This document shows, piece after piece, positions 2,610 through 64,000 of a DNA stretch of 64,000 bases. This DNA comes from Stegostoma tigrinum (lineage: Eukaryota). The DNA lies in contig NC_081400.1 of assembly GCF_030684315.1 (NCBI RefSeq), forward strand, positions 8,437,464 to 8,501,463. Reading direction: 5' to 3'. Within the stretch, counting starts at the first letter, position 1. Every line of letters begins with the position of its first letter. The position numbers were made by a program, and so were the translations under genes. Under the pieces are notes generated by a model. That model did no database searches. It worked only from the letters and a program-made list of their open reading frames with translations, and was not told where the DNA came from.

Positions 2610-5110
2610 CACGGAGCAGGAAAGCTTGACGTTTTGGGACAGGACCCTGCTTCAGAAAAAGCTTTCCTGCTCATCTGATACTGCTTGGCCTGCCGTGTTC
2701 ATCCAGCCTCACACTGCGTTATCTCAGATTCTCCAGCATCAGCAGTTCCTACTATCCTAGTAGTCTGGTGTGAACTTTCTGAAAGTGTGGTGCAGAATTT
2801 TGTGTCTCGAAGACTGAAAAGTAATTCAGTGCAAAATTACAAGTTCTTCATTCGATTTGCACTGAGTCTTGCAGAAATACTGCAACAGGCCTGAGACACA
2901 AATCTTGAAGTAGAAACACGGAGGGCTATTGATTTGAGTGGCACTTGGAAGCTAAGGATTTTTTTTTATTTTGGAAAGAGCAAAAGTGTTCGACAAAGTG
3001 TTCGTCTAGTCGTTTTTGTCTTCACTCCAGTGTACAGGAGGCCATGTTGTGAGCAGCAAATGAGATGGAGGCAAATTGTTGCTTCAACTGAAAGATGTGC
3101 CTGGGCCGTTGAACGATGAGGAGGCAGACGGCAAACTGATACGTTTTGCACCATCGGCATGGGAAGTTTCACCATTGTTTGGGAGTGGAGCTGGTGTCAG
3201 AGAGGAACAGTTTCTGCGAATGTTGTTGATGGATGTAAGATGAAATATGGGCCTGAGGCAATATCCTGCTGCAGGTGGTGGAAATGGTAACATGTGATCC
3301 TTTGGATACGGAGATAGGTAGGGAGAAATAGAGGACTAAGGGACCGTATCTTGGCCGTGATTGGATTGGAGAAGAGTAAGGGAGATGTGCAGGGAATGGA
3401 TCAGAGATATCTGAGGCGTGTCTCGACGAATGTGACGAGGGTTCTACAGTTGAAGAAAATAGTTAAAATTTTTGAGGTTCACCTTTTATAAGATGGTTTC
3501 ATCAGAACAGATGTGCCAGAGATGACAATTCTGGGAAAACGGAATGGTTGTCCTGACCAGTACCGTGGTATCAGGGTGTGTACTAAAGGACGGGACTCAG
3601 TGGGTCTGTAATGGATGACAGTGGCCATTTTATCACCAGATATACAAATGAAGATGTCAAGAAAGGGACCAGTTGAAAGTAAGACAGGGGTAGAAATTGG
3701 AATCAAAATTTACGTTGTTTTTTTTTCCAATTCTGCATGAAGGATGAAAACAACACTGACGATGTCATTGATACACCACAGGAAGAGTTGTTGGTTGTGT
3801 CCTGAGTAAGACTGGATTAAGAAGTGTTCCATGTAACCCAAAAAGAAACATGCATATCTGGTGCTCATGTGCAAGTCTTTTACCTGAAGAAATGAGACGA
3901 GTTAAAGGAGAAGTTGTCCAAAGTGAGGACAACCACGTCAGTAGAAAGAGAGGACAAGGTGACCATCACGTTGTCGTGATTGGATTAGATAGGGGTAAGG
4001 ACAGTTGTGCAGGGAATGGATCAGAGATATCTGAGGCCTGTTTCGACGAATGTAATGAGGAATCCTCAACTGGCCTGGTAGAAGAGCATGGTGGTGCAAG
4101 GCAGCATACAACTCAAGGAAGAAGCGGAAACCATTCAACCTTGATGGAAATGTAGGTGGAATGCAATTCCTTTGTGAAGATGAGGTATCTGATAGTCGCA
4201 AACTGGAAATTTTGAGACAGACGTATTGGCTCAGATGATTTGCAGATGTAGGTCAGAATAGGCTGGATTAAAAAAAGAAATGAGGTAAGGTAGGACGAAA
4301 TAAGTTCAGTAGGGTAGGAACAGGCTGAAACATTGGGTTTTCCAAGGCAGTCGTGTTTGTGAACTTCTGGTAGAAAGTAGAAGGACCATGAGATGGGCAG
4401 CTCTGAGGCAGTGATACTCAGCTGAGATATAGTTACTGTAGGCGGCCTGAGCGCTGGTGCTCAGTCTCAGCAAGGTAATAGTCAGTTTTCCAGAGAACAA
4501 CACCACTCTTGTCAACTGGCTTGATTACAGAGTCAGAGTTGGATCTAAGAGCACAAAAAAATGCTGACAATAGAGGAAGATCGTTGAAACTGGTAACAGG
4601 ACCCGGGAAATATCACGAGTCAAGTGTAGGTCAGGTCAGGATGGCATGGTGGTTAGCACTGCTTTGGAGCAGCACCAGTGACCTGGGTTCAATTCCACTT
4701 TCGGGCGAGTGACTTTGTGGAGTTTTCATATTCTTCACATGCCTGCGTGGGTCTTCTTTGGATACTTCTGTTACCTCCCACAGTCCAAAGATTGTTACTT
4801 AATGCGGATTGGCTGTTGGAGTTGCTGAGTTACAGCGACATGTTGGGGAATGGGGTCAGGGTGTGATTCTATTTGCAGGGACTGTCTGGATTCAAAGGGC
4901 TGAATGGTGAGATTCCACACTGTATGATTGTATGAAGAAATCGGCGATCATAGGAAGAGGTCCTTTTGGTGGGAGAGTGTTGGAGGTGGGTGAAGTATTC
5001 TGTTGGACGGGCAGAGTAGTAGCCCTATCAAAAGAGTGATGAAGGTGACAAAACAAAAGTTCAATGTCATGTCAAACCCAACATTCAGAGAGTTGGGGGT
5101 GTGAAGGGAT
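2610..5110 (-). mobile_element. Highly decayed Penelope-like element (pLTR remnants plus RT/GIY-YIG relic)
   Basis: pLTR remnants near 2610-2755 and patchy nucleotide similarity to the better-preserved element at 32560-34630. No intact ORF. Confidence 0.6.
4640..4935 (+). mobile_element. HE1/V-SINE-like SINE (degenerate)
   Basis: ggcatggtggttagcactgc...gacctgggttcaattcc head and V-SINE-like core. The matching copy at about 48815-49100 shows it predates the duplication. Confidence 0.75.
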
Positions 5111-14744: not shown

Positions 14745-14970
14745 AATCAGAACTGCAGATGCTGGAGAATTCCGGATAACAAAGTGTGGAGCTGGATGAA
14801 CACAGCAGGCCAAGCAGCATCTCAGGAGCACAAAAGCTGACGTTTTGGGCCTAGACCCTAAATCAGAGACGCTCTCTGATGAAGGGTACAGGCCCGAAAT
14901 GCCAGCTTTTGAGCTCCTGAGATGCTGCTTGGCCTGCTGTGTTCATCCAGCTCCAAACTTTGCTATCTCG
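14745..14970. mobile_element. Inverted pair of Penelope pLTR fragments, each with a degenerate hammerhead motif
   Basis: About 14775-14869 is the approximate reverse complement of about 14872-14969. ctctgatgaagggtacaggcccgaaatgccag lies at 14874-14905. Confidence 0.8.
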
Positions 14971-16571: not shown

Positions 16572-18326
16572 ACAAGATAACAAAGTGTGGAGCTGGATGA
16601 AAACAGCAGGCCAAGCAGCATCACAGGAGCACAAAAGCTGACGTTTCAGGCCGAGACCCTTCATCAGAGAGGGGGATGGGGAGAGGGTTCTGGAATAAAC
16701 AGGGAGAGGTGGGAGGTGGACTGAAGATGGTGAGAAAAGAAGATAGGTGGAGAGGAGTGTATAGGTTGGGAGGTAGGGAGGGGATAGGTCAGTCCAGGGA
16801 AGATGGACAAGTCAAGGAGGCGGGATGAGGTTAATAGGTAGGAAATGGAGGTGCAGCTTGAGGAGGGAGGAAGGGATGGGTGAGAGGAAGAACAGGTTAG
16901 AGAAGCGGAGACAGGCTGTGCTGGTTTTGGGATGCAGTGGGGGGAGGGGACGAGCTGGGCTGGTTGAGTGATGCAGTGGGGGGAGGGGGTATTTTGAAGC
17001 TTTTGAAGTCCACATTGATACCATTGGGCTGCAGGGTTCCTAAGCGGAATATGAGTTGCTGTTCTTGCACTCTTCGGGTAGCATTATTGTGGCACTGCAG
17101 GAGGCCCATGATGGACCAGTCGTCTGAGGAATGGGAGGTGGTGTTAAAATGGTTCGCGATTGGGAGGTGCAGTTATTTATTGCGAACCGAGCGGAGGTGT
17201 TCTGCAAAGCGGTCCACAATCATCCGCTTGGTTTCCCCAAAGTAGAGGAAGCCACACCGGGTACAATGGATACAGTATACCACATTGGCAGATGTACAGG
17301 TGAACATCTGCTTAATATGGAAGGTCATATTGGGGCCTGGGATGGCAGTGAGGGAGGAGGTGTGGGGGAAAGTGTAGCACTTCCTGAGGTTGCAGGGGAA
17401 GTTGCCAGGTGTGGTGGGGTTGGAAGGTAGTGTGGTGCAGACAAGGGAGTCACAGAAGGAGTCGTCTCCCCGGAAGGCAGACAAGGGTGGGGCTGGTAAA
17501 ATGTTTTGGGTGGTGCGGTCGGATTGTAGATGGTGCAAGTATCAGAGGATGATGCGTTGTATCCGGAGTTTGGTGGGGTGATATGTGAGAACGAGGGGGA
17601 TCCTCTTGGGGCGGTTGTGGTTCAGGCGGGGTGCGAGGGATGTGTTGCAGGAAATGCGGGAGACATGGTCAAGGGCGTTCTCGACCACTGTGTGGGGAAA
17701 GTTGCTGTCCTTGAAGAATATGGGCATCTGGGATGTGCGGGAGTGGAATGCCTCATCCTGGGAGCAGATGCGGTGGAGGCGGAGGAATTGGGAATAGGCG
17801 ATGGAATTTTTGCAGGAGGGTGGGTGTGAGGAGGTGTATTTTCGGTAGCTGTGGGAGTCAGTGGGCTTGAAATGGACGTCAGTTTCTAGCTGGTTACCTG
17901 AGATGGAGACTGAGAGTTCCAGGACAGTGAGAGATGTGTTGGAAATGGCACAGGTGAACTTGAGGTTGCAGTGGAAGGTGTTGGTGAACTGGAAGAACTG
18001 TTCGAGCTCCTCTGGGGAGCAAGAGACAGCACTGATACGGTCATCAATGTAACGGACCTGTCTGTCTTCCCTGGAATGACCTATCCCCTCCCTTCCTCCT
18101 CAACTATACTCTCCTTTCCACCGTTCTTCTTTTCTCTCCATCTTTGGTCCACCTCCCCCTCTCACCCTATTTATTCCAGAAACCTCTCCCCATCCCCCTC
18201 TCTGAAGAAGGGTCTGGGCCTGAAATGTCTGCCTTTGTGCTCTTGAGATGCTGCTTGGCCTGCTTTGTTCATCCAGATTCACACTTTGTTATCTTGGATT
18301 CTCCAGCATCTGCAGTTCCCACAGTC
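16572..18326 (-). mobile_element. Penelope-like element, 5'-truncated (RT C-terminus plus GIY-YIG endonuclease), with an inverted pLTR at 18053-18325
   Basis: ORF 17173-17538 has NVVYCIHCTRCGFLYFGETKR (GIY-YIG). Flanked by a 13/14 matching TSD (acacagctactgaa 16558-16571, acacagctgctgaa 18327-18340). Confidence 0.9.
16638..16669 (-). ncRNA. Minimal type I hammerhead ribozyme motif in a Penelope pLTR
   Basis: Minus strand ctCTGATGAagggtctcggcctGAAAcGTCag: intact CUGAUGA and GAAA cores, stem II, palindromic ACGT stem III, GUC site. Confidence 0.75.
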
Positions 18327-19399: not shown

Positions 19400-19570
19400 A
19401 GAGTGTGGGGCTGGATGAACACAGCAGGCCAAGCAGCATCTCAGGAGCACAAAAGCTGACGTTTCAGGCCTCAACCCTTCATCAGAGAGGGGAATGGGGA
19501 GAGGGTTCTGATACTCTTCTCTCCAAATGTCTTCTCCTCTGTCCAGCTTCGATACACCTCCCCCTCTTTC
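19400..19570 (-). mobile_element. Penelope pLTR fragment with hammerhead motif (19456-19487)
   Basis: ctgacgtttcaggcctcaacccttcatcagag is the reverse complement of the hammerhead core. Flanks match the pLTR at 16575-16690. Confidence 0.75.
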
Positions 19571-20074
19571 CCTTACTATTTCACAAGTGTTACGTTGAAG
19601 GAGCGTTTTTTTTGGATTTGGGAAACTGCAGAAGCAGGAAGATCTCTACTGGCTTCAGAAACCGAAGTAATAGTGGAAGTCCCACGTTGTGAGAAGAGAT
19701 GACAGGTATAATATTTCAAGAAGTTTCGTGATCTCACGATGGATTTGGTTTTTGGGCAGCTTTCAGAGATTGGATGGATTGTAGGAGCTGGGTGATTTTT
19801 CAGAAATATTTTGTTCAGGAATTGCTGGAGAGCAACATTTTTTGCATGCTAGGAGTGTGTCATCAAATGGAGAGATGAGCAGTATTGCTGAGAACAAAAA
19901 TGAAAACAATAAATAACCAACTGGCACAGGACAAACATACGTGCATAGATTTGGCTACAGGCTGGCATAATATGCAACAAAAAGCAAAACAATCATGACT
20001 ATAAAGTAAAATCAGATTGCAACTTTCATGACTGACCCAATTTTAGGATGGACTTGGAGATATGGGCAGCATTT

Positions 20075-20891
20075 TACACACTACAGCACAGAGGAACTAC
20101 GAAGAGCAGAAGAAAATCACCTATACAGCATATTCAAACAGAACGTGTACCCAATGAACACAGTCCCACGATTTCTCAGCAACAAACCCAAACAAACAGA
20201 CAAAACGGGCCCAGAAACCATAACCACTCTTCCCTACATGAAAGACATTTCGGAAATGACTGCCAGACTACTCAGATTTCTTGGCATCAGGGTAGCCCAC
20301 AAACACACCAACACTCTAAAACAGCAGCTAATGAACTTAAAAGACCCTTTACAGACAACAAGCAAAATGAATGCCATCTACAAAATACCTTGCAAGAACT
20401 GCAACAAACACTACATTGGACAAACAGGCAGAAAGCTAGCCACCACGATGCATGAACATCAATTAGCCACAAAGCGACATGATCCACTGTCACTAGTATC
20501 CTTACATACAGATGAGGAAGGACACCACTTTGATTGGGACAACACATGCATCCTAGGACAAGCCAAACAGAGACACGCACGCGAATTCCCAGAAGCATGG
20601 CATTCCAACCGGAACTCCATCAACAAACACATTGATTTGGAGCCAATCTACCATCCACTGAGAAAAGGAACAGGAAATGACATCACCAACGCAGGAAATG
20701 ACATCACCACCCCAAGGAAACCTGAACAGATCAATAGAAAGCGGGACGTAACACCAGCGCTTCATCGGAGGCTCACTGATGATGTTACCTAGAATGGTGA
20801 CGAAAACGTCTGAAAACTAACCTTCCAGCTCAGCGAGCAAACTCACATCCAAAACTCAACCTGAGCTACAAATCTTCTCCAAACTCGCTAA
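20075..20891 (+). mobile_element. Penelope-like element, second (Poseidon-like) family: 3' GIY-YIG endonuclease and pLTR
   Basis: ORF 20028-20792 contains AIYKIPCKNCNKHYIGQTGRKLATTMHEH and HHFDWDNTCIL. Confidence 0.9.
20773..20813 (+). ncRNA. Type I hammerhead ribozyme motif of the Poseidon-like pLTR
   Basis: tca-CTGATGA-t-gttacc-tagaat-ggtgac-GAAA-ac-GTC-tga: stem I tca/tga, stem II gttacc/ggtgac. It has one extra A relative to the copy at 57648-57662. Confidence 0.75.
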
Positions 20892-20894
20892 TAC

Positions 20895-23600
20895 TTGATG
20901 AACTTCTGTCTATTTCTTGTGTGCACGACCATGTCACGTTCCTCATTTCCTGACAGCGACTGTAATTTTAAGATCTTAACATTCGCGGATATATTCAGAT
21001 TCTTCTCTCGTCAAAGTTTTGATTAAAAAACTGCATTAATTTTTCATTTCTATCCTGTAATTCAGTTAATTTTCTGCACTGAAAGTATCCAGTTCTTCTC
21101 CACCTATTCTTATTCTTTTTCTCAACTAGTAGATCAAACATTTTCTCTGAGAAATGAACTTCAGTTATCTTCTATTTATTTTCTGGTTTCTCCTCCTGCT
21201 TCAACTTAGTTCCCACACATTCAGGAAGCAGCTCACGTTGTTCTTCCTGGATCACCTGAGTTGTCTGATTTTCTGCTGGCACTTCAAACACATTCGGGAT
21301 CATTCCCACCTGCAATCCCGCTATTTCATTACTAAGGATAAATTGAATTCCTGGAATTGCGATTTTCTCTATCAGGCCTATCACCCCTTGACCACTTTCC
21401 CCCGGACTCCCAAAACTTACTTTATACAATGGAACACTAATATATTTTCCGCAAAATTGCACATATTACCCTTCTTTTTTTCTGATAGTTGCCCTTCTGA
21501 AATATCTATCTCCTCGTGTCTCAACATTAAATATTGATTTAATCCCGTGTCTCTTAAAATTTTAATTTGTTTAATTAATAAACATGCTCCTCCTGGCATC
21601 TATGAACAAGTAAATTTGTTAAAGAATTCTGACACGGTCCTCTCAACCAACCCGTTCTGTGGCACCCATTCTGGGGCAGCTTTTTTTTTACATTTCACTG
21701 TGCTTTCCTCTACAGTGATAAACTCACTGGTTTATCCTGTTTTGCCACAAATGTGTTCCAATTCTTTTCTTTTGTAAAAGCTATCAACACTGTGACTTCA
21801 CGTGGCCTCCTTCATTGCACTGAAAAGAAGTGATTGTTTTTACTTATCTTTCCCCTAATGGGTTTACATTTTATGCTTTGATATCCTTATCCTCGTCAGG
21901 ATATCCTTTAACCTTATTCCAGATTTCACTTTTTCACAATTCCTAACTATCACAGACTGGATTTGATGTCGGAGGTGAAAATTGATTTGTGAGCGAAGTC
22001 ATAACCAACTGCTCCAAATCTTGCAGTTTTAACCCTCTGCTCTTCCCCATGACTTCTCGATAGTTGAGAATGTGAGTTTTTGAACACCTACAAACTAGAC
22101 GTCTTTCCAAGATGTTGGTCCATTATAAAGTCCTTTATCTATCTCTCAAAATTAGTTTGCTCCTTTCAAACTCGATGTACATTGGATGAGGGTCCCTCCT
22201 TAGATTCCTGAAACATTGTCTTTTGGTGCCTGGTAATAGCTCATATGCACTGAAGATGACATTTTTCAACTTGTGACGCTCCCCAAATGCCTCCTCTGGT
22301 AGAGATGCAAATACTTCACCACCTCTACCTATCAGACTTGTTTGGTCATTACTACCCACATGGTCACTGGCAATCTTATTGGTTTAGCTCCTTTCTCAAC
22401 TGAAACACAAAAGCTCCTATATCCTTCCTGTCAAATGTAGGCAATGGTTTCACATATTTAAACAAATCTACATCGGACTTTTGGCTACGATAAGATTGGT
22501 CATCATCACTATCCTTCTCACTAAACCTACCTTCTAACAGCTCTTCCACCCTTTTGAATTGACTATCTTTCCCAACTGACTTCTGACTTTCAAACACTCC
22601 TACTTTTTGCATTTCATCTGCTTTGGTCTTTGTTTTTTTTTCTCCTTCTCCTGCCTTCACTAGTAATTCAAAAGGTTTCATTTCATTACTCTTTCTTTTT
22701 GTTCAGCTGTGGGTATTCTTTCCCTTCATTTAAATTCTGCAGGGGCTATCACTTCCCGTGCAATTGTATCTCATTCAATTTGCTTCACTTGCAATTGAAT
22801 TATCGCCATTTCCAATCACTCCAATAGCATTCTTGGCAATTGCAAATTCCACGTATTTGCCACAATTATTTCCCTTTTTCTCACTGACATAGGCAACTCA
22901 ACTCCATTTTTCTTTTGCCAAGTATAAAAGGTTTTCCTTACTCACTTTTTGTAAAACTTCACAAGTAACTCACTCAACCCTCAGGAACGGTTCATTGACT
23001 GAGCTATTGCTACAAAAAGTACAAACTCATTAACCCAACTGAATTCAACAACTGAGACAAAAAAAGCACTCGATGCCTTTGAGTGCAATAACTCTAAATC
23101 CTACTTTGAATTTCAGATTTTGATCCCAACAAGCGCTTTCAATTTCTTAAGTGCCAGACAAAACCCCTTCAAACTATTCAGAAGATGGTATAGATGCTAA
23201 CTTGGTCTTATTTCCAATGTAATATTTTGCATTCCAGATGAAATTCAAATCGTCAAATGTTCCAGACTCAAAACAAAATACATTTTATCTGTCTTTAATG
23301 ACATCAGCAATGTAACTCTATTGGAAAACTTAACAGGATAATAGATGCAATGACTATGAAGATTTCCCTGACCGCTGCCTTAAAACCCCTCTTCAAAATA
23401 CCCAGTACAAAATAACCTGTGGAAGCCTCAGCCTCAACACAGTTAGTAATTGACACTCCCCAACTGAGCTTTTCTTTTGTATACAGATGTAACTCAGATG
23501 TTGTATAAAGGTCAAAATTTGTGGAAGAATGCTTCTCATAGAGATAGAATCTGCAACTCACTGCCTATACCCCTGATAACGGGAGCTTTCCTCAACACCA
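20895..23600 (-). mobile_element. Gypsy (Gmr1-like) gag/protease relic with adjoining LTR relic
   Basis: ORFs 22376-22681 (DLFKYVKPLPTFDRKDIGAF), 22135-22359, and 21417-21599 with protease motif ILRDTG. LTR boundary approximate. Confidence 0.65.
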
Positions 23601-32560: not shown

Positions 32561-34630
32561 ACCCACAGCCTCCAACCTCATTATTCCCCAACCCCGCATG
32601 GCCTGTTTCTATCTCCTTCCCAAAATCCACAAACCTGCCTGCCCTGGGCGACCCATCATTTCAGCCTGTTCCTGCCCCACCGAACTCATCTCCACCTATT
32701 TGGACTCCATTTTCTATCCTTTGGTCCAGGAACTCCCTACCTCCGTCCATGGCACCACCCATGCCCTCCACCTTCTCCAGGACTTCCAATTCCCTGGCCC
32801 CCAACACCTCATTTTCACGATGGACTTCCAGTCTCTATATACCTATATTCTTCATGCAGATGGCCTCAAGGCCCTCTGCTTCTTCCTGTCCCACAGGCCC
32901 GACCAATCTCCCTCTACCACCACCCTCATCCACCTAGCCAAACACGTCCTCACACCAAACAACTTCTCTTTCGATTCCTCCCACTTCCTACAGACAAAAA
33001 GTGTGGCCGTGGGTACCCGCATGGGCCCCAGCTATGCCTGCCTCTCAGTAGGTTACGAGGAACAGCCCCTGTTCCGCACCTACACAGGCCCCAAACCCCA
33101 CCTCTTCCTCCATTACATTAATGACTGTATTGGTGCCGCCTCTTGCCCCCCAGAGGAGGTCGAACAGTTCATCCTCTTCACCAACACCTTCCACCCCAAC
33201 CTCAGGTTCACCTGGACCATCTCCAACACATCCCTCACCTTCCTGGGCCTCTCAGCCTCCATCTCAGGTAACCAGCTAGAAACTGATGTCCATTTCAAAC
33301 ACACTGACTCCCACAGCTACCTAGAATACACCTCCTCCCACCCACCCTCCTGCAAAAATTCCATCCCCTATTCCCAATTCCTCCGCCTCCGCCGCATCAG
33401 CTCCCACGATATGGCATTCCACTCCTCCCGCACATCCCAGATGTCCACGTTCTTCCAGGACCGCAACTTTCCCCCCACAGTGGTCGAGAACGCAATTGAC
33501 CACGTCTCCCGCATTTCCCGCAAAATATCACTCACACCCCGCTCCCGCCACAACCGCCCAAAGAGGATCCCCCTCATTCTCACATGCCACCCCACCAACC
33601 TCCGGATACAACGCATCATCCTCCGACACTTCCGCTATCTACAAACTGACCCCACCACCCAAGACATTTTTCCATCCCCACCCTTGTCTGTCTTCCGGAA
33701 AGACCACTTTTCCGTGGCTCCCTTGTCCGATCCACACTCCTCTCCAACCTCACCACACCTGGCACCTTCCCCCGCAACCACAAGAAGTGCTACCCTTGCC
33801 CCCACACCTATTCCCTCACCCCTATCCCAGGCCTCAAGATGATTTTCCATATCAAACAGATGTTGACCTGCACATCTGCCAATGTGGTACATTGTATCCA
33901 TTTTAACCGGTGTGGCTTCCTCTACTTTGGGGAAACCAAGCGGAGGCTTGGTGACCGCTTTGCAGAACACCTCTACTCGGTTCACAACAAACAACTGCAC
34001 CTCCCAGTCGCAAACCATTTTAACTCCCCCTCCCATTCCTCAGATGACATGTCCATCATGGGCCTCCTGCAGTGCCACAATGATGCCACTCGTAGGTTGC
34101 AGGAACAGCAACTCATATTCCGCTTGGGAACCCTGCAGCCCAATGGTATCAATGTGGACCTCATAAGCTTCAAACTCTCCCCTTTCCCCACTGCATCCCA
34201 AAACCAGCCCAGTTCTTCCCCTCCCCCCGCCGCGTCACACAACGAGTCCAGCTCGACCCCTCCCCCCACTGCATCCCAAAATCAGCCCAGCCTGTCTCCG
34301 CTTCCCTAACTTGTTCTACCTCTCACCCATCCCTTCCTCCCACCTCAAGCTGCACCTCCATTTCCTACATATCACTTCATCCCGCCTCCTTGCCCTGCCC
34401 GTCTTCCCTGGACTGACCTATCCCCTCCCTACCTCCTCACCTATACTCTCCTCTCTACCTATCTTTTTTTCTCTACATCTTCCGTCCGCCTCTCCCTCTC
34501 TCCCTATTTATTCCAGTTCCCTCTCCCCATCCCCCTCTGTGATGAAGGGTCTAGGCCTGAAACGTCAGCTTTTGTGCTCCTGAGATGCTGCTTGGCCTGC
34601 TGTGTTCATCCAGTTCCACACTTTGTTATG
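32560..34630 (+). mobile_element. Penelope-like element: RT (ORF 32598-33842), GIY-YIG (ORF 33839-34309) and pLTR; frameshifted
   Basis: FYLLPKIHK, GRPIISAC, MDFQSLYT, GTRMGPSYAC, YIND (catalytic YIDD altered), LYFGETKRRLGDRFAEH. The pLTR hammerhead at about 34538-34568 has a mutated core (GTGATGA). Confidence 0.95.
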
Positions 34631-37519: not shown

Positions 37520-40200
37520 TAGAGTCATAGAGTTATACACTGCAGAAAAGGCACTTCGGCCCAATGGATCTATACCAGCATAACTACTGCTGATTACACT
37601 TTCTTGCGTTTCTCTCATATTGCCGAATTTCCTCCAATTTTGTAAGGATTGCAATGTTTACAGTCTCCACTATATCCCCAGGAAGTGCATTCCCGATTCC
37701 CACTGCCTTCTGCCTGAAAATGTTTTGCTTTATTTTTCTGCAACGCCCCACGAATTATCGTGACCCTCTCATGAATGACAATCTCAATCACGGACATTTC
37801 TGCTCTCTATTCTGCCTGCGCACACCCTTCATAAACTTATACACCTCAGTCATATACCCTCTCGGTCTGCTAGACTCTTCAGAACACAATTCAAGCCTGT
37901 CTAATTTCATCCCACAGATCAATTTCTCCAACCCAGGCAACATACCAGTGACCCCCTATGTACCCCATCGAATGATATCACATCCTTCCTGTAGTGAGCT
38001 GACCAGAACTGCACATAATACTCCAAATGTAATCGAAGTAACGCTTTGCAGAAGTCCAACATTAACTCCTTGATCTTATATGCACCATAAATCATGAACA
38101 TAAGCGTCCCATATGCCTCCTTAACGGTCTTATTCACGTACTCTGCGTACAGCAGGGATCTGTGAGTCATTAACGCAAGATACTTGGCTTCTGCTAAGCT
38201 ACACAATGTCCTGCCGTTAACTAAATATTCCCTCAACTTGTTACTTCTTGAAAAGTATATCAACCCAAACTTATCAGAGTTAAATATTATTTGCCAAACC
38301 TGTGTCCCGATGAATGAACTATCTATACCCTCTTGCAACCGTCAATCATTTTCTTCAATATTAACCACATTACCAATTTTGGTGTTGGCTGCAAACTTAT
38401 TAAAGATCTCCCCCTAAACCCCACCACACATACGCACACTACATTTTCATCTATATCATGTCTGTACAAACAATAAGGTTTATAATAAGGTTTATAATCC
38501 TCGCATTCCACCACTGGACACCGGCCTCCCATAATTCGAACTGTTTTCTAGCACAAGCCCAGTTTGCGCTCCATCTCGCCAAGTTTCCCTGTATTCTGTG
38601 TGTTTTAATCTTATCAATTATTCTCCCATGTTAGACTTTCCCAAAACCTTTGCAAAGATCCATATAAAACACAACTACTGATCGTCCCCCATCTGCACTC
38701 TTGATTATATTTTCTGAAAGATTCTAACAAATTTAATTGGCATGACCACCCTCTGAAAAAGACATACTGACTGTCTTTAAAGAACCCATGATTCTCCATA
38801 TGGGTATTAATTCTGTCTCTCAGAAAATTTTCCAAAAGTTCCCTATCACTAACATATGATTCACCACCTGTTTTCCTGGTTCATTGCTACCACGCTACAT
38901 AAAATGTGGAACCACATTAGCATCTTCCAGTCCACTGGCACGTCATCTGGAGCCAGATAGCAATTGCAAATTTGTGTAAGAGGCCTTGAAATTACCTCCC
39001 TCATCTCCCAGAGCAGCCTAGGATGAAATTCATTCAGGACTGGAGATTTGTCCGTTTTCAGCCTGACAAAGCCTCCAATACCTTCTCATTTTAACAGTTC
39101 CTCCAAACCCCCTTTCCTGAATTCTAGTATCTCCTTTTCTAGACAGCGACCGAAGAGAAGTATTTCTTCAACACTCTTCCAGTGTCCGTTGGATTCAAAC
39201 ACAGGTCGCCCCATTGGTGCCTAATGAAGCCTCCTCTTTCACTGCTTAACCTCTTCCCTTTAATATACTGAAGTAAAACACGGTTATGCAGACTTGGTCA
39301 TTTGGCCAGTGTTTGTGATTGCAGACATTTCGTCACCCTGTCAGATAAGATCAGCGTGCCTCTGGTGAAGTGTTCGTGTTCTGGCCAATTTGTTACTTAT
39401 ATGCCTCCGTTCGGCACAGCAAGCAAGTCTGCAAACTCAGCCACGACCAAAGTACAATCCTTCTCAAAAAGGCTTTAAAATTCAAAAAGCAGCATTCTCA
39501 CTAATTCTCTTCGTAAGTTCTCCTTCATGCCCCCTTTTTTGAGCTTCTAGTTGGTCTATTAAGTTCCCTCCTGCACTTTCTGTATTCCTCTAGGGCCGCA
39601 ACTGAATTTCTCCTTTTGAACTTGCTAAAAGCTCTACTCTTTTTCTTTATTCAGTCCTGAACATATTGCTCTTATATTACCCTCTACCTGGTATATGTTT
39701 GACTTGTACCCTCCCCAGCTCAGTTTTCAATACCTCCTACTGCTGTGCTGACCTACCTGAAAAGAGCTGCTCCCAGTCACTTTTGGCCAGATCCTGCTTT
39801 GCTTTAATAAAATCTGGCTTCTCCCAATCCAAAGCCATAGCTTGAGGGCTATTTCTTCCTTCTCCAGAACAAATTTGAATCATATTTTGTGACGGCCTCT
39901 ATTGCTCAAATGTACCCCCAGTCCCACAAAAAACACGTCTTACTGCTTTACCCAGAGCAGATTCAAGCAGTGTGCCATTCCTTGTACCGCATAATTCAAA
40001 AAACTCCCCTCGATAGGTTTCAAGAAATCCATTCCCTCTAAACCCTTAATGCTATGACTATCTTGGTTTATGTTGTGAAGGATGAAATCTCATCGTATAA
40101 TTTTGCAATTATTACTCTTACACGTTTCTTACTTCGTGCTGACTCTTTGGGCCCTATTATACACATCCATTAAAGTAACTGGCCCCTGAACATTTCTGAC
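37520..40200 (-). mobile_element. Decayed CR1 LINE in the last intron of the receptor gene, with a Poseidon-like pLTR remnant at about 39300-39370
   Basis: ORFs 37919-38338 (LHLEYYVQFWS) and 38614-38835. Confidence 0.8.
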
Positions 40201-55906: not shown

Positions 55907-56058
55907 GTTTTTTTTGAAGATGTGTGCATGTGAATTTTAGATGTTGACTCAATGAGAGATGGTGCTTCTGGGCAAGTCTGACTGAGAGAGACTGTGTTCG
56001 TGCACAAGAGAGTATTATGTTATCATGTTATATTGTATGGAGTGAAAGGTCTCTGTAT

Positions 56059-56059
<1 letters not shown>

Positions 56060-56107
<48 letters not shown>

Positions 56108-56789: not shown

Positions 56790-57500
56790 TGAAATGTGAG
56801 GCTGGATGAACACAGCAGGCCCAGCAGCATCTCAGGAGCACAAAAGCTGACGTTTCGGGCCTAGACCCTTCATCAGAGAGGGGGATGGGGTGAGGGTTCT
56901 GGAATAAATAGGGAGAGAGGGGGAGGCGGACTGAAGATGGAGAGAAAAGAAGGTAGGTGGAGAGGAGCGTATAGGTGGGGAGGTAGGGAGGGGATAGGTC
57001 AGTCCAGGGAGGACGGACAGGTCAAGGAGGTGGGATGAGGTTAGTAGGTAGGAAATGGATTTGCGGCTTGGGGTGGGAGGAAGGGATGGGTGAGAGGAAG
57101 AACAGGTTAAGGAGGCAGAGACAGGTTGGACTAGTTTTGGGATGCAGTGGGTGGAGGGGAAGAGCTGGGCTGGTTGTGTGGTGCCGTGGGGGGAGGGGAC
57201 GAACTGGGCTGGTTTCTGGATGCAGTGGGGGAAGGGGAGATTTTGAAGCTGCTGAAGTCCGCATTGATACCATTGGGCTGCAGGGTTCCCAAGCGGAATA
57301 TGAGTTGCTGTTCCTGCAACCTTCGGGTGGCATCATTGTGGCACTGCAGGAGGCCCATGATGGACATGTCATCTAAAGAATGGGAGGGGGAGTGGAAATG
57401 GTTCGCGACTGGGAGGTGCAGTTGTTTATTGCGAACTGAGCAGAGGTGTTCTGCAAAGCGGTCGCAAAGCCTCCGCTTGGTTTCCCCAATGTAGAGGAAG
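56790..57500 (-). mobile_element. Penelope-like element 3' fragment (GIY-YIG C-terminus plus pLTR)
   Basis: ORF 57131-57367 (MSIMGLLQCHNDATRRLQEQQLIFRLGTLQP) is nearly identical to the end of ORF 33839-34309. Confidence 0.9.
56847..56878 (-). ncRNA. Minimal type I hammerhead ribozyme motif (consensus-intact)
   Basis: Minus strand ctCTGATGAagggtctaggcccGAAAcGTCag. Confidence 0.8.
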
Positions 57501-57568
57501 CTGCTCAGTAAGGCAATGTCTACAGCAATGTGTGCAGCTTAAATTGTTTGCCAAAAGAACACTGTTGG

Positions 57569-57662
57569 TAGCGAGTTTTGAGAAGATTTGTAGCTCAGTT
57601 TGAGGTTCTGGATGTGAGTTTACTGGCTGAGGTGGAAGGTTCGTTTTCAGACGTTTCGTCAC
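57569..57662 (-). mobile_element. Poseidon-like pLTR 3' part, cut inside its hammerhead (Tx1 target site)
   Basis: Reverse complement aligns with 20797-20891. It begins gtgacGAAAcGTCtg exactly at the Tx1 poly(A) junction. Confidence 0.9.
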
Positions 57663-57935
57663 TTTTTTTTATTTGAAAAAATATACTTTATTCATAAGCT
57701 GTACAAAAAATAAAACATTTATTCACCTACCCAGTCATGCAAGCCATTCCGGGTTACCCAGGGGTACGTACACCAACTAAAGGGAAAAAAACAAACAAAC
57801 AAATAAAACCAAATAAAATACCCCGGCAGTTGTCACCCCGCACAGTCCCTGTTGGCCCCCTGACCAGTTGGGGAAGGCGCCAGCTGGGCCCAGTTACCAG
57901 ATAGGGCCTTTTTTTTCTATTCTGGATGCGGGGTT

Positions 57936-60900
57936 TCATACGATGGTCTTTCCCCACCGCGCCTTGGCGGCGGCTGCCCCAAGCTTTAGTGCGTCCCTCA
58001 GCACGTAGTCCTGGACCTTGGAGTGCGCCAGTCTGCAACATTCGGTCGGGGTCAGTTCTTTCAGCTGGCAGACCAGCAAGTTGTGGGCAGACCAAAGAGC
58101 GTCTTTCACCGCATTGATGGTCCTCCAGGCGCAGTTGATGTTGGTATCGGTGTGCGTCCCGGGAAACAGCCGGTAGAGCATGGAGTCCCGTGTCATGGAG
58201 CTGCTCGGGACGAACCTCAACAAATACCACTGCATCCCCCTCCAGACATCCTGCGCATAGGCACACTCCAGAAGGAGGTGATCAACAGTCTCCTTCCCCC
58301 CGCAGCCACCTCGAGGGCAGCGTGCGGTGGTGCAGAGATTCCGGGTATGCAGAATGGATCTCACTGGCAGAGCCCCCTCTCACCGCGGGCCAAGCAATGT
58401 CCTTGTACTTGTTTGAAAGTTCTGGCGATGAGGCATTCTGCCAAACGACTTTGGCAGTCTGCGTGTGGAACCACACGACGGGATCCACCCTCTCCTTTTC
58501 CCGAAGGGTCTCGAGAATACTACGTGCTGACCACTGCCTGACGGCCTTGTGGTCAAAGGTGTTTCCTTTCAAAAATTTCTCCACGAAGGACAGGTGGTAC
58601 GGAACGGTCCAACTACTCGGAGCGTTCCACGGCAACGATGCCAGGCCCATCCTTCGCAACACCGGGGACAGGTAGAACCTCAGTAAGTAGTGACACTTGG
58701 TGTTTGCGTACTGAGGATCTACGCACAGCTTGATGCAGCCGCACACAAAGGTAGCCATCAGGGCGAGGGTGGCGTTTGGTACACCCTTGCCCCCATTTTC
58801 CAGGTCTTTGTACATGGTGTCCCTGTGGACCCGGTCCATCCTCGACTCCCAAATGAAGTGGAAGATGGTCCGGGTGACTGCAGCGGCGCATGCCCAGGGA
58901 ATAGGCCAGGCCTGCGCCACATACAACAGTACCGAAAGCCCCTCGCACCTGACAACCAGGTTCTTACCCGTGATGGAGAGGGACCGGAGCATCCACCTGC
59001 CCAGCTTCTGCTTCAATTTGGTGATACGCTCCTCCCAAGTCTTAGTGCACGCCCCAGCTCCACCAAACCAAACACCCAGCACCTTCAGGTAGTCTGTCCT
59101 GATGGTGAAGGGGATGAAGAAGCGGTCGTCCCAGTTCCCGAAGAACATGACCTCGCTCTTACCCCTATTGACTTTGGCACCCGAGGCCAGTTCAAACTGG
59201 CCGCAGATGTCCAATAGTCTACTCGCCGACCAACGATTGGTGCAGAAGACGGTGACATCGTCCATGTGCAGGGAGGTCTTGACCTGAAGGCCTCCGCTGC
59301 CTGGGATAGTCACGCCCTTCAGGCTCACATCCTTCCTGATGCATGCAGCGAAGGGCTTCACACAGCATACGAACAAGGCAGGAGAGAGCGGGCAGCCCTG
59401 CCTGACTCCAGATCTAACAGGAAAACTGTCCGATTCCCACCTGTTGATCGAGACTGCGCTAATGATGTTGGCGTAGAGCAGCCGGATCCAATTACGGATG
59501 CCCTCCCCGAACCCCAATTTGGAGAGGACATCCCTCGTGAGCATGAGAGACCCTGTCGAAGGCCTTCTCCTGGTCAAGGCTGACGAGGCAGGTGTTCACC
59601 TGCCTGTCCTGCACGTAGGCGATTGTATCCCTGACGAGCGCGAAGCTCTCAGCGATCTTCCTGCTCGTCACAGCACAGGTTTGGTCAGGGTGAAACACCG
59701 ACTCCAGGACAGACCTGACCCGGTTGGCTATGACCTTGGCCAGGATTTTGTCGTCTACGTTCAATAGTGAAATGGGACACCGATTCTTAATTTCTTCCCT
59801 CTCCCCCTTCCTCTTGTAAATGAGGGCGATGATGCCCTTCCTCATGGACTTGTACATTTCCCCTGCCCGAAGCGCACTATCGTACACCTCCAGCAGGTCC
59901 TGGCCAACCAGGCCCCACAGAGCGGAATACAGCTTGATCAGTAAGCCGTCGTTTCCGGGAGTCCTATTCCTCTCCAAGGCCTTGAGGGCTAAGGTCAGCT
60001 CGTCCAGGGATATTGGCCGGTCCAGCCACTCCCTTGTGCCGTCGTCTAAGACCTCCATGATAGACGACAGGAACGACTTGGAGGCCATGCTGTCCATGGG
60101 CTTCATGTCGTACAGTCCAGCATAGAAGGATCTGCTAATCCTCAAAATGTCGGGCCGAGACGACGTCACCGAGCCGTCGTCCTCCTTCAGCCGGCTAAGC
60201 ACAGAGCTCTCTTTGCGCACCTTCTGAAAGAAGAAACGTGAGCACGTCTCGTCCTGCTCCACGGAGCGGACCCTGGACCGGAAGATTATCCTGGAGGTCT
60301 CCGCGGTGAAGAGTGAGGCTTGCCGGCCCCTCACCTCGCGGAGGTCCTCCGTGACATCGACCCCCATCAACTGCAGAAGGAGCAGCTTCTGCACCTTTTT
60401 ACTGGAGTCGCGACAGCTTTCCCCGCCTCTCTCTCACCTTCCGAACACCCTTGAGGACAAAGAACCTCTTAATGTTCTCCTTCACCGTTTCCCACCAGTC
60501 GCCCGGAGACTCAAAGAGGAGTTTTACGGTTCTCCAACTGGCGTACTCCCTCTTAAGCTCCTCGATGTTCTCTAGGGTCAACAGAGTCGTGTTGAGCTTC
60601 CACGTCCCCTTGCCGTCCGGCTGGTCGTCTTGTAAGTGACAGTCGGCCAGCAGGAGGCAGTGGTCAGAGAAGAACACCGGCTCGACGCCGGTGGACCTGA
60701 CCGAGAATGCCCGTGACACAAACAGGAAGTCTATCCTTGAGCGGATAGACCCGTCTGGCCGCGACCAGGTGGACCTCCGCTGCGCTCTGTCTGCAGGGGT
60801 GCTGAAGACGTCGAGCAGCTTGGCGTCCTTCACCGTGCCCATCAGAAATCTGGACATGACGTCCAGTTGACTCCCCCCACCCGCTGTCCCCACGCCGGAT

Positions 60901-61357
60901 CTTCCATCTGCATCAATGATGCAGTTGAAGTCTCCGCCTAGGATGACCGGCCTGGACGTAGCCAGCAGGGATGGAAGCCGCTGCAGGACGGCCAACCGCT
61001 CACTCCGCACCGCTGGGGCGGACACGTTGATCAGCCTCAGGGGAACGTTCCTGTAGGTGACGTCAGCCACTAGGAGGCGCCCCCCCCACCACGTCCTGAA
61101 CTTGAGAGATGGTGAAGTCGCGCCCCCGCAGCAGAATAGCCAGGCCCGAGGAGCGACAGTCGTTACCCACCGACCAGATCGAAGGCCCACCAGGTCCAGG
61201 CGCCGGACCATTTCCCGTAACTGCCGAGGTGCAGTATCCCGCACTCCTGCAGAAACAGGAGGCCTGCCTTGATGGTGGTCAGGTAGGCCAACTTGGATAC
61301 ACATCTTGCGGTGGACTTGACACCGCGCACATTAATGCTCGCAACTCGTACGCCCAT
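57936..61357 (-). pseudogene. Tx1 ORF2 (APE endonuclease, RT, C-terminal zinc knuckle) with several frameshifts
   Basis: Pieces in ORFs 61163-61387, 60399-61304, 59492-60394, 58282-59577 and 57936-58364. Motifs: SINVRG, LQE, GGDFN, RIDF, SDH, LDQEKAFDRV, GVRQGCPLSP, HMDD (expected YMDD), CPRGGCGGKETVDHLLLEC. Confidence 0.92.
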
Positions 61358-61389
61358 TGTGGGCAGTGACCGCAGTACCCTCCCCAAGT

Positions 61390-62793
61390 CAAAGGTCCAG
61401 CCCCTCCATCTGTCCCTTCATGCCCATTGCCCGGGCTATCTGCTGGATGCTCTCCGGGCTCAGGAAACCATCCGTGCTGCCTTCCAGGTGGCATCCCCCC
61501 GTAGGGGTGCGGAGGCAGGAGGGTCTGGCTCTGGGTCAGGCTGGGGACGCGCTGTTTCCTCCTTCCCGCCTGGAAGTTCCGGGGGGCCCTCCAGTGCCCC
61601 AGCGGCGCTTGACTGGGTGTCGGAGGGTGCCTCAGGATTCCTCCCGTCACCTAGAAGCGTGGTGCTGCTTGCCTTCTCCCTCGAGATCTTTAACTTCTGC
61701 TTCAGGCGGGCCCTCTCCGAATCCCCCTCGTCAGAGGAGCTCTTATAGCCCCCCTGTAGCTGCCTCTTTCCACCTGATGGTTGCGGTTCCTGGGCCCGTC
61801 GACGCACCTTCCTCCTTGCTTTCAAGACCGTCGTCCACTCCCCTGGGTCGGCTGTCGCCACCTCCTTCGACTCCAGGTTGTCGGGGGGGAGTGGAGCCTG
61901 CAGGGGCGCTTTGCTGGCCTCGGGCCCATCCTGTGGGGCTGGGCCCTCCTGCACGACCTGGCCCTCCTGCACATTAGTGGGGTCCTTGCTGGGCCCTGGT
62001 GCCTTCCTCTCCTCCGGGGGGGCTCGCCCCGCATTGCCCCTGCCAGCAACCTGGGCGTAGGTGGTCCCCCGCTGCAGGCATGCCCAAAGAGGTGGCCCGC
62101 TTCCCCGCAAAGGTTGCAGCTTTTCTCTTGTGGGCAATCTTTTGCAAGGTGTTCCTCCTCGCTGCAGTTCTTGCAGATGGTGACTTTGCAGTCGGCCGCC
62201 ACGTGGCCTGACCTATCACAGGCATGGCAGACTTTAGGTTGCCCTGCATAGGTCAGGTAGCCCTTGCTCCCGCCAATCGCGAAGCTGGACGGTGGGTGTA
62301 CAATGTTCCTGTCCGCGCCCATCCTCAGCGTCACCTTGACCTGCCTCTTACTGGTCCAGATGCCAAAGGGGTCCATGATGTCAGTTAGGTCCCCTTCCAC
62401 CTTCACGTACCTCCCAAGGAAGGTCACGACATCAACTGCTGGCACATGCGGGTTGTACATGTGTACAGTCACCATACGGCTCCTCTGCTCTGGCGTCACA
62501 AACAACGGGACAGTGGTCAATACAGAGAGTGGGCCCTCACTTCCTTTCTCCTTGAAAACCTCCAGGAAGCGCTCGCAAAGCTTGGCACTCCTGAAGGTCA
62601 TGTCGTAAAAACCTCCTCCTGGGAAATCCTGCAGGCAGTAAATGTCCGCAGCAGTGAACCCACAACAGTCCAACAGGACCCTCTTCATGAAGAAGGTGCG
62701 GTCCACAGGTGCACCTTCATCCACTTTCTTCACGGAAACACGGATGGTGTTCCGGACCCCCTGACCTGGGGCACGAGCACTTGCCGCAGCCAT
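61390..62793 (-). pseudogene. Tx1 ORF1 (gag-like, three CCHC zinc knuckles), frameshifted
   Basis: Starts MAAASARAPG at 62793. Knuckles CHACDRSGHVAADC, CKNCSEEEHLAKDC and CNLCGEAGH. Continues in ORF 61460-62137 (TTYAQV); end approximate. Confidence 0.88.
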
Positions 62794-63007
62794 CGTTGCA
62801 GGTTGGCTGCTCCCCTGAACCAGCGTTAGGCCGAAGCCAGCATTAAGATCCACCGGTTGCAAGGGTGCACAGCCAACCCGACATCCTCCTTTCACCTCCA
62901 ACACAGCACTCTCCTCCTCTCGGTCCACAAGAGAGTGGGTCTTTATTTTGTTCCAGATGTAAGCTGGTTCACCGAGCTTGAAGGTTTGTTCCCAGATGTT
63001 TTGTCAC

Positions 63008-63760
63008 TTTTTTTTATTTGAAAAAATATACTTTATTCGTGAGATGTACAAAAAAAAACATATTTATAGACCTACCCAGTCATGCAAGCCGCTCCGGGTT
63101 ACCCAGGGGGTACGTTCACCAACTAAAGGAAAAAAACAAAACAAAGAAGAAAAAAAACAAAGCAAAGAAAATACCCCGGCAGTCGTCACCCCGCACAGTC
63201 CCCGTTGGCCCCCTGACCAGTTGGGGACGGCGCCAGCTGGGCCCAGTTACCAGATAGGGTTCTTTTTTCCTATTCTGGACGAGGGGTTTCATACCGTGGT
63301 CTTTCCCCACCGCGCCTTGGCGGCGGCTGCCCCAAGCTTTAGCGCATCCCTCAGCACGTAGTCCTGGACCTTGGAGTGCGCCAGTCTGCAACACTCGGTC
63401 AGGGTCAGTTCTTTCAGCTGGCAGACCAGCAAGTTGCGGGCATGCCAAAGAGCGTCTTTCACCGCATTGATGGTCCTCCAGGCGCAGTTGATGTTGGTCG
63501 CGGTGTGCGTCCCGGGAAACAGCCCGTAGAGCACGGAGTCCCGCGTCACGGAGCTGCTCAGGACGAACCTCGACAAATACCACTGCATCCCCCTCCAGAC
63601 CTCGTGCACGTAGGCACACTCCAGAAGGAGGTGATCAACAGTCTCGTCCCCCCCGCCCCCCCCGCAGCCACCTCGAGGGCAGCGTGCGGTGGCGCAGAGA
63701 TTCCGGGCATGCATAAAGGATCTCACTGGCAGAGCCCCTCTCACCGCCAGCCAAGCAATG
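63008..63760 (-). mobile_element. Tx1 copy 2, 5'-truncated, flanked by a perfect 16-bp TSD
   Basis: ORF 63289-63744 matches the ORF2 C-terminus of copy 1. ccagatgttttgtcac occurs at 62992-63007 and 63761-63776. Confidence 0.93.
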
Positions 63761-63776
63761 CCAGATGTTTTGTCAC

Positions 63777-64000
63777 TTTTTTTTTATTTGAAAAAATATA
63801 CTTTATTCATAGAATGTACAAAAAATAAAACATTTATACACCTGCCCGGTCATGCAAGCCATTCCGGGTTACCCAGGGGTACGTACACCAACTAAAGGAA
63901 AAAAAAACAAAACAGAGAAAACAAAACAAAAACACAAAGCAAAGAAACCGCCCCGGCAGTCGTCACCCCGCACAGTCCCAGTTGGCCCCCTGACCCGTTG
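63777..64000 (-). mobile_element. Tx1 copy 3, 3' UTR, continuing beyond the window
   Basis: Same poly(A) junction and 3' UTR as 57663-57870. Confidence 0.9.

Follow-up and report, generated by a model that had tools for sequence, protein, structure and literature searches.

Known target-specific LINEs and minimal hammerheads

Long interspersed nuclear elements (LINEs) of the Tx1 clade provide the closest described parallels to the locus considered here, a 64-kb window of the genome of the shark Stegostoma tigrinum (the whole stretch of DNA analysed; all coordinates are positions within it), at whose right end three copies of one L1/Tx1-type LINE family lie head to tail on the minus strand. 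Tx1 families insert at fixed positions of Mariner-N4_AMi, of retrotransposons with long terminal repeats (LTRs) and of Harbinger elements (Kojima 2015, PMC4494074). SINEU-3, which is mobilised by Tx1 families, is flanked by 16-bp duplications and forms tandem insertions 'sandwiching a TSD' (target-site duplication) by sequential insertion, and the Tx1 families concerned are probably transcribed from the flanking target (PMC4494074). The shark LINE resembles these crocodilian elements, Tx1-Mar and others together with SINEU, in occupying a defined position within another transposon, in its 16-bp TSD (shared with SINEU-3) and in its tandem insertions, and transcription from the flanking target is suspected in both cases. 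It differs from them in its target, which is a Penelope-like element (PLE) at a hammerhead motif and not a DNA transposon or LTR element, in its elasmobranch host and in the 57-nt copy of the downstream target that it carries at its 5' end. Tx1L of Xenopus laevis, which inserts in the piggyBac-type element Tx1D, is likewise an L1-like LINE with an APE endonuclease and specificity for a site in a mobile element (cited in PMC4494074); its target and host are other than those of the shark LINE, the two being compared by description.

R2 offers a parallel of a different kind. A ribozyme resembling that of hepatitis delta virus cuts the 5' end of R2 from a 28S co-transcript (cited in PMC4209133 and PMC4494074). 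R2 is, like the shark LINE, site-specific, devoid of an obvious promoter of its own and lodged in a transcribed multicopy target, and a ribozyme could also define the 5' end of the shark LINE RNA. R2 encodes a whole ribozyme and a restriction-like endonuclease in these accounts, whereas the shark LINE would take a putative hammerhead half from its host PLE and has an A at position 12 in copy 1, its full-length copy.

The minimal hammerheads of PLEs are recognised by their catalytic boxes, an extra base between positions 9 and 10.1, a G10.1-C11.1 pair, a long helix II and a palindromic 15.2-16.2 step (Cervera and De la Pena 2014, PMC4209133). The target motif of the shark LINE shares the catalytic boxes, the extra base, the pairs, helix II and the terminal position in the PLE. 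The published motifs are not described as insertion targets, and the shark motif matches no Rfam model. A literature search covering papers outside Repbase and Dfam found no PLE or ribozyme motif as a target of Tx1 or L1-Tx1 elements, and no LINE whose 5' end copies its own downstream target. Transposon-targeting Tx1 elements, 16-bp duplications and tandem insertions are already published, and the PLE hammerhead as a target is probably new.

Three LINE insertions at one motif

The arrangement of the three copies suggests that this LINE inserts sequence-specifically into the hammerhead DNA of one PLE family, here called PLE-A, and that the array grew by re-insertion; this is considered likely. 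The copies are as follows.

57663..63007, minus strand: copy 1, full-length LINE; length 5,345 nt, poly(A) of 8 nt at 57663-57670, and ORF2 (the second open reading frame, ORF) in at least four reading-frame pieces
63008..63760, minus strand: copy 2, 753 nt, 5'-truncated, beginning at copy 1 position 4609, with an 8-nt poly(A) at 63008-63015
63777..64000, minus strand: copy 3, a LINE 3' end with a 9-nt poly(A) at 63777-63785, continuing past the window edge

All three finish ...GAATAAAGTATATTTTTTCAAAT followed by 8, 8 or 9 A, and a search of the window with the element's final 25 nt gives exactly three matches, where 0 are expected by chance. On the minus strand, each of the three poly(A) ends (57663, 63008 and 63777) directly abuts GTGACRAAACRTCTG. 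An earlier note on this DNA had reported this common motif, the perfect 16-bp TSD of copy 2 and the restriction of the motif's variation to two CpG-to-TpG changes, and all three observations were reproduced. The junction features are listed below.

57648-57662: motif beside the copy 1 poly(A), plus-strand reading cagacgtttcgtcac
62993-63007: motif beside the copy 2 poly(A), plus-strand reading cagatgttttgtcac
63762-63776: motif beside the copy 3 poly(A), plus-strand reading cagatgttttgtcac
57647..57662, minus strand: target 16-mer GTGACGAAACGTCTGA, immediately after the copy 1 poly(A)
62992..63007, minus strand: downstream 16-mer of the copy 2 duplication, GTGACAAAACATCTGG, identical to 63761-63776
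63761..63776, minus strand: upstream 16-mer of the copy 2 duplication, GTGACAAAACATCTGG, which also abuts the copy 3 poly(A)

The two positions at which the motif beside copies 2 and 3 differs from the 57648-57662 site are both CpG-to-TpG on the plus strand. A search for the 15-mer with up to three mismatches gives five sites in the window, where 1.0 is expected; the LINE junctions account for three of them. A LINE has been regarded as target-specific when one sequence is present in more than 20% of its flanks (PMC4494074); here the same flank is found at three of three junctions, counted within the window. An unoccupied occurrence at 39322-39336 on the minus strand, GTGACGAAATGTCTG, has one CpG-type mismatch to the target; a degenerate CTGATC box precedes it, and what follows it does not resemble the PLE-A tail.

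Copy 2 supplies the single example of a 5'-truncated copy, starting at position 4609, with the same 16-mer on both sides. Because it combines truncation, a poly(A) of its own and a perfect 16-bp duplication, it points to target-primed reverse transcription at this site. Template switching from RNA to RNA was considered and ruled out, as it cannot place the 16-mer before a truncated copy. By blastn, copy 1 shares 90.3% identity with copy 2 and 85.7% with copy 3. The alignment of copy 2 with copy 1 has 679 matches and 57 mismatches, and in aligned columns copy 3 is approximately 90% identical to each of the other two. Pairwise divergence in aligned columns is 8-10% and about equal for every pair, and this divergence, together with the perfect duplication around copy 2, marks the three as separate insertions.

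Adjacent copies in one orientation could also arise by local tandem duplication or unequal recombination of a single insertion, and the common junction could be a coincidence. These explanations are extremely improbable: the units differ from one another (full-length, truncated at 4609, partial), their breakpoints fall exactly at the boundaries between poly(A) and target, all pairs are equally diverged, and neither the threefold 25-nt 3' end nor the number of 15-mers agrees with the chance expectations given above. The idea that the motif is simply the LINE's own 3' end was also rejected, as behind copy 1 it is continued by 94 nt of PLE tail and empty sites are found in sequence contigs. Both of these readings, local duplication and a motif belonging to the element, had been named by the earlier note as possible refutations of its proposal, and both are contradicted.

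From its sequence copy 1 is dead, because its ORF2 is split over at least four frames. Most contigs of the family differ from copy 1 by a one-letter insertion or deletion at 61190, and therefore at least one of the ORF2 frameshifts is private to copy 1. A (GT/CA)n microsatellite lies at 56017-56100, approximately 1.5 kb from the array, and appears as CVCVCV... in an ORF translation.

The target: a minimal hammerhead motif of a Penelope-like element

The sequence on the far side of the copy 1 junction belongs to PLE-A, of which a LINE-free relative lies elsewhere in the window.

57569..57662, minus strand: PLE-A tail, comprising the hammerhead 3' part (helix II 3' arm, GAAA, CGUC) and the post-cleavage sequence; downstream flank of copy 1
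20776..20810, plus strand: intact type-A minimal hammerhead, found by pattern match; unoccupied reference in which the LINE insertion bond is 20796/20797
20028-20792: PLE ORF, ending inside the hammerhead motif
16640-16667, 19458-19485 and 56849-56876, minus strand, and 18202-18229, plus strand: second-family hammerhead motifs, CTGATGA-A-GGGTCTNGGCCY-GAAACGTC; four sites, one of them degenerate

The 94-nt tail behind copy 1 is 90.5% identical, over 95 columns, to 20797-20890. The intact site reads CUGAUGA-U-GUUACC-uagaau-GGUGAC-GAAA(A)CGUC, with one extra A between GAAA and CGUC. Upstream of 20797 stands ...GGAGGCTCACTGATGATGTTACCTAGAATG, where the PLE ORF ends, and the hammerhead 5' half of PLE-A is ...CTGATGATGTTACCTAGAATG; the LINE insertion point falls one base into the helix II 3' arm. 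The catalytic boxes CUGAUGA, GAAA and UH stand in type-I order at 20776-20810, with the 3' boxes at 57648-57662, and the site has a U bulge between 9 and 10.1, a G10.1-C11.1 pair, a 6-bp helix II (GUUACC/GGUGAC) and a palindromic CG at 15.2-16.2. By these published features the type-A motif is a candidate PLE minimal hammerhead that has no covariance model match. The earlier identification of the motif as the stem II 3' arm, GAAA core and GUC of a hammerhead seen whole near 20773-20813 is hence upheld on features, the intact copy being placed at 20776-20810. Rfam returned no hammerhead in the whole window at gathering score, nor in 20650-20950 at E<=10. Rfam hammerhead models describe canonical hammerheads with a helix III, and this miss is expected because the motif is without one. 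Minimum-energy folds of the native and of a modelled junction recover helix II and not helix I, a result that is uninformative for a ribozyme that depends on dimers.

The PLE ORF at 20028-20792 has no Pfam match of its own. Its Stegostoma relatives, 85-87% identical, carry RVT_1 and a weak GIY-YIG (E=0.003-0.02, below the cut-off), and the ORF is assigned to a PLE because RVT_1 followed by GIY-YIG in close homologues is the architecture of endonuclease-bearing PLEs. The hammerhead thus sits in the terminal region of a PLE that, judged by these relatives, has a reverse transcriptase and a weak GIY-YIG match. More distant relatives of the PLE-A endonuclease region, 50-53% identical, come from the liver flukes Opisthorchis and Dicrocoelium and from a contig deposited as the bacterium Cetobacterium, the last probably through host contamination of that assembly.

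Public sequencing data were consulted as Logan contigs from four runs, almost none of which reach 20 or more letters into the flanks. Among the matches listed, 60 contigs of one species and 6 of a second cross position 57662 as an uninterrupted site. Contigs leaving the PLE-A tail at 57662 continue as CATTCTAGGTAACATCATCAGTGAGCCTCC, the reverse complement of the hammerhead 5' half, and their consensus equals 20767-20796. The same contigs show the LINE family at high copy number. Many joints within the contigs of the first of these species share the end points 58283, 59414, 60901, 62276 and 62847, with 0.4-4.6 kb of the element skipped and short sides of 20-23 nt; these may be internally deleted non-autonomous derivatives or artefacts of the assembly graph.

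A search of the window for the minimal-hammerhead pattern returned six candidates against 0.96 expected. The second-family motifs sit in repeats of approximately 110 nt, found also at 14768-14962 and 34519-34627, and have GAAACGTC but not GTGAC in common with the target; all four sites carry GAAAYGTC. None of the four second-family sites, including one 800 bp from the array, carries a LINE insertion, and therefore the preference appears to be for the DNA sequence of one PLE family and not for hammerheads as such. The proposal in the earlier note that the family targets a ribozyme motif of another retroelement is accordingly supported in part, and describing the family as ribozyme-targeting calls for caution.

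Fragments of another PLE lie at 57300-57501, 33915-34116 and 17051-17252; their GIY-YIG region has the sequence ...YIGETKRRL..RFAEH.... Approximately 67 nt separate one of them from the end of the PLE-A tail under the array, and PLEs are therefore nested here. This setting bears on a further explanation, according to which one LINE insertion in a master PLE was spread as cargo by the PLE machinery, so that recurrence of the junction would reflect PLE amplification. As the PLE tail that bounds the array breaks off at approximately 57569 inside another PLE, the whole block could have been introduced as a 5'-truncated composite. Copying as cargo, however, cannot make copy 2, with its 5' truncation, its own poly(A) and its perfect 16-bp duplication at the same bond, nor can it give three neighbouring copies that are 8-10% apart; wherever the array was assembled, target-primed insertion took place separately at least two or three times in its history. 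Truncated copies with differing start points and the target on either side serve as the test against hitch-hiking in PMC4494074. This alternative appears quite improbable.

The 5' end of the full-length copy and proposed growth of the array

The 5' terminus of copy 1 itself resembles the target.

62951..63007, minus strand: 'target mimic' at the 5' end of copy 1, 57 nt long; a gapless, in-register diverged copy of the PLE-A sequence after the insertion point

Compared with the flank at 57662-57605, the mimic matches at 41 of 58 positions (71%; alignment, counted by hand), far above chance and far below the 90% identity between genuine PLE-A tails. Up to position 15, two CpG transitions are the sole differences from the PLE flank. 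By its sequence the full-length LINE itself includes the downstream target as an old copy, and copies 2 and 3 inserted in this target-like sequence. The first 15 nt of the mimic fit a 16-nt duplication and a cleaved 5' end equally well. The expectation in the earlier note that new copies re-insert at a regenerated site holds in that the insertions are separate; the part that fails concerns the site of copies 2 and 3, which is the 71%-identical copy of the PLE tail and not a plain regenerated duplication.

In the mechanism proposed, the APE endonuclease would nick the antisense strand of the minimal hammerhead of one PLE family, one base into the helix II 3' arm (bottom strand 5'-...CGTCAC^CATTC..., before GTGAC on the other strand). 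For copy 1 the bottom-strand nick would lie between 57662 and 57663. Reverse transcription would be primed on the short poly(A), and a cut of the sense strand 16 bp downstream would lead to duplication of GTGACGAAACGTCTGR. Each insertion would leave the 16-mer on its own 5' side, and full-length copies would add the diverged downstream-target copy of about 57 nt; the site would thereby be restored on the upstream side of every copy, where later ones would land head to tail. The endonuclease would be the source of specificity, and the preference would presumably extend genome-wide. The 15-16-mer is the sole sequence common to all three insertion events, the later of copies 2 and 3 having met a target with poly(A) upstream or with the body of copy 2 downstream.

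It may be asked whether the LINE targets only itself, the motif having been captured once from a PLE as the LINE's own 5' end, with new copies hitting old 5' ends and PLE hammerheads rarely or incidentally. Two of the three junctions do lie in the target-like 5' sequence of copy 1 and not in a PLE, and the 71% likeness of that sequence to PLE-A implies that it evolved with the LINE. The 3' junction of copy 1, in contrast, is at the same bond of a genuine PLE-A tail, and targeting confined to the LINE appears improbable.

Several points weigh against specific insertion into PLE-A. Three junctions were read, two of them at one site inside the array, which leaves effectively two target contexts. 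The evidence of specificity comes from the junctions of this window and is not a genome-wide count. The array continues past 64000, so that its upstream end and the hammerhead 5' half expected there fall outside the window, and no LINE occupies the intact type-A site at 20776-20810. Finally, the Tx1-clade label is provisional, being based on the domain architecture, which fits it. Insertion into the PLE-A hammerhead followed by re-insertion nevertheless seems the likely history of the array.

Proteins and classification of the LINE

The coding regions recognised in copy 1 are listed below.

61822-62928, minus strand: ORF1, with RBD_ZCCHC3_1st, RBD_ZCCHC3_2nd and zf-CCHC knuckles (Pfam)
60399-61304, minus strand: APE endonuclease, Exo_endo_phos E=1.3e-10 (Pfam)
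58282-60394, minus strand: reverse transcriptase, RVT_1 E=5e-12 and 5.4e-15 (Pfam)
57936-58364, minus strand: zf-RVT, weak at 24.6 bits, under the 27.5 cut-off

ORF2 thus has an N-terminal APE domain followed by an L1-like reverse transcriptase, ORF1 encodes RNA-binding domains with CCHC knuckles, and a C-terminal zinc motif is found in ORF2, the zinc-binding domain PF13966 being present in homologues. Human L1 ORF2p is the nearest solved relative (E=7e-25 for the reverse transcriptase, E=9e-4 for the endonuclease), and neither a search of the ESM Atlas nor the ZCCHC3 paper discriminated Tx1 from L1 for this LINE. The closest proteins, 60-79% identical, come from Hemiscyllium, Cetorhinus, Heterodontus, Mobula, Scyliorhinus, Heptranchias, Rhinoraja and Mustelus. 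Scans of metagenome contigs and of bacterial and archaeal genomes with exact patterns and proteins gave no match. Given the family's relatives across sharks and rays, the relationship between the LINE and the PLE may be old.

Possible use of the ribozyme by the LINE

The target-like 5' end raises the further possibility that the LINE uses the hammerhead as well as inserting into it. For a solo insertion, the PLE 5' half, the 16-bp duplication (bearing GAAA and GUC) and the helix-I-like 5' end of the LINE might together rebuild a ribozyme at the 5' junction; PLE read-through transcripts would then be cut after GUC to give unit-length LINE RNA. In the mimic all eight of the eight helix-I pairs are kept, one of them through an A-to-G change that gives a U-G pair, and the 5' untranslated region of copy 1 is short, about 210 nt, both of which speak in favour. 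Against it, the retention of pairs is not significant (P about 0.28), and the 16-mer at the copy 1 5' end has an A at core position 12, besides an A at 16.2. Upstream of the array copies lies poly(A) and not the hammerhead 5' half that an R2-like 5' junction would have. The published minimal hammerheads of PLEs show poor cleavage in vitro and need to dimerise (PMC4209133), which also weighs against such use; on balance it is doubtful.

Significance

If the specificity holds genome-wide, a ribozyme motif of a retroelement would join the safe multicopy targets of LINEs, which so far comprise rDNA, snRNA, tRNA and 5S genes, microsatellites, DNA transposons and LTR elements. The hammerhead would be a durable target because it is the most constrained part of the PLE tail. 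As insertion splits the ribozyme, one transposon would disable another. Were the LINE also to use the ribozyme, it would be borrowing a promoter and half a ribozyme from another retroelement. The target-like 5' end provides a testable model for the formation of arrays and may show where a LINE without a promoter obtains the 5' end of its RNA; if true, this would give an in vivo handle on the function of the minimal hammerheads of PLEs.

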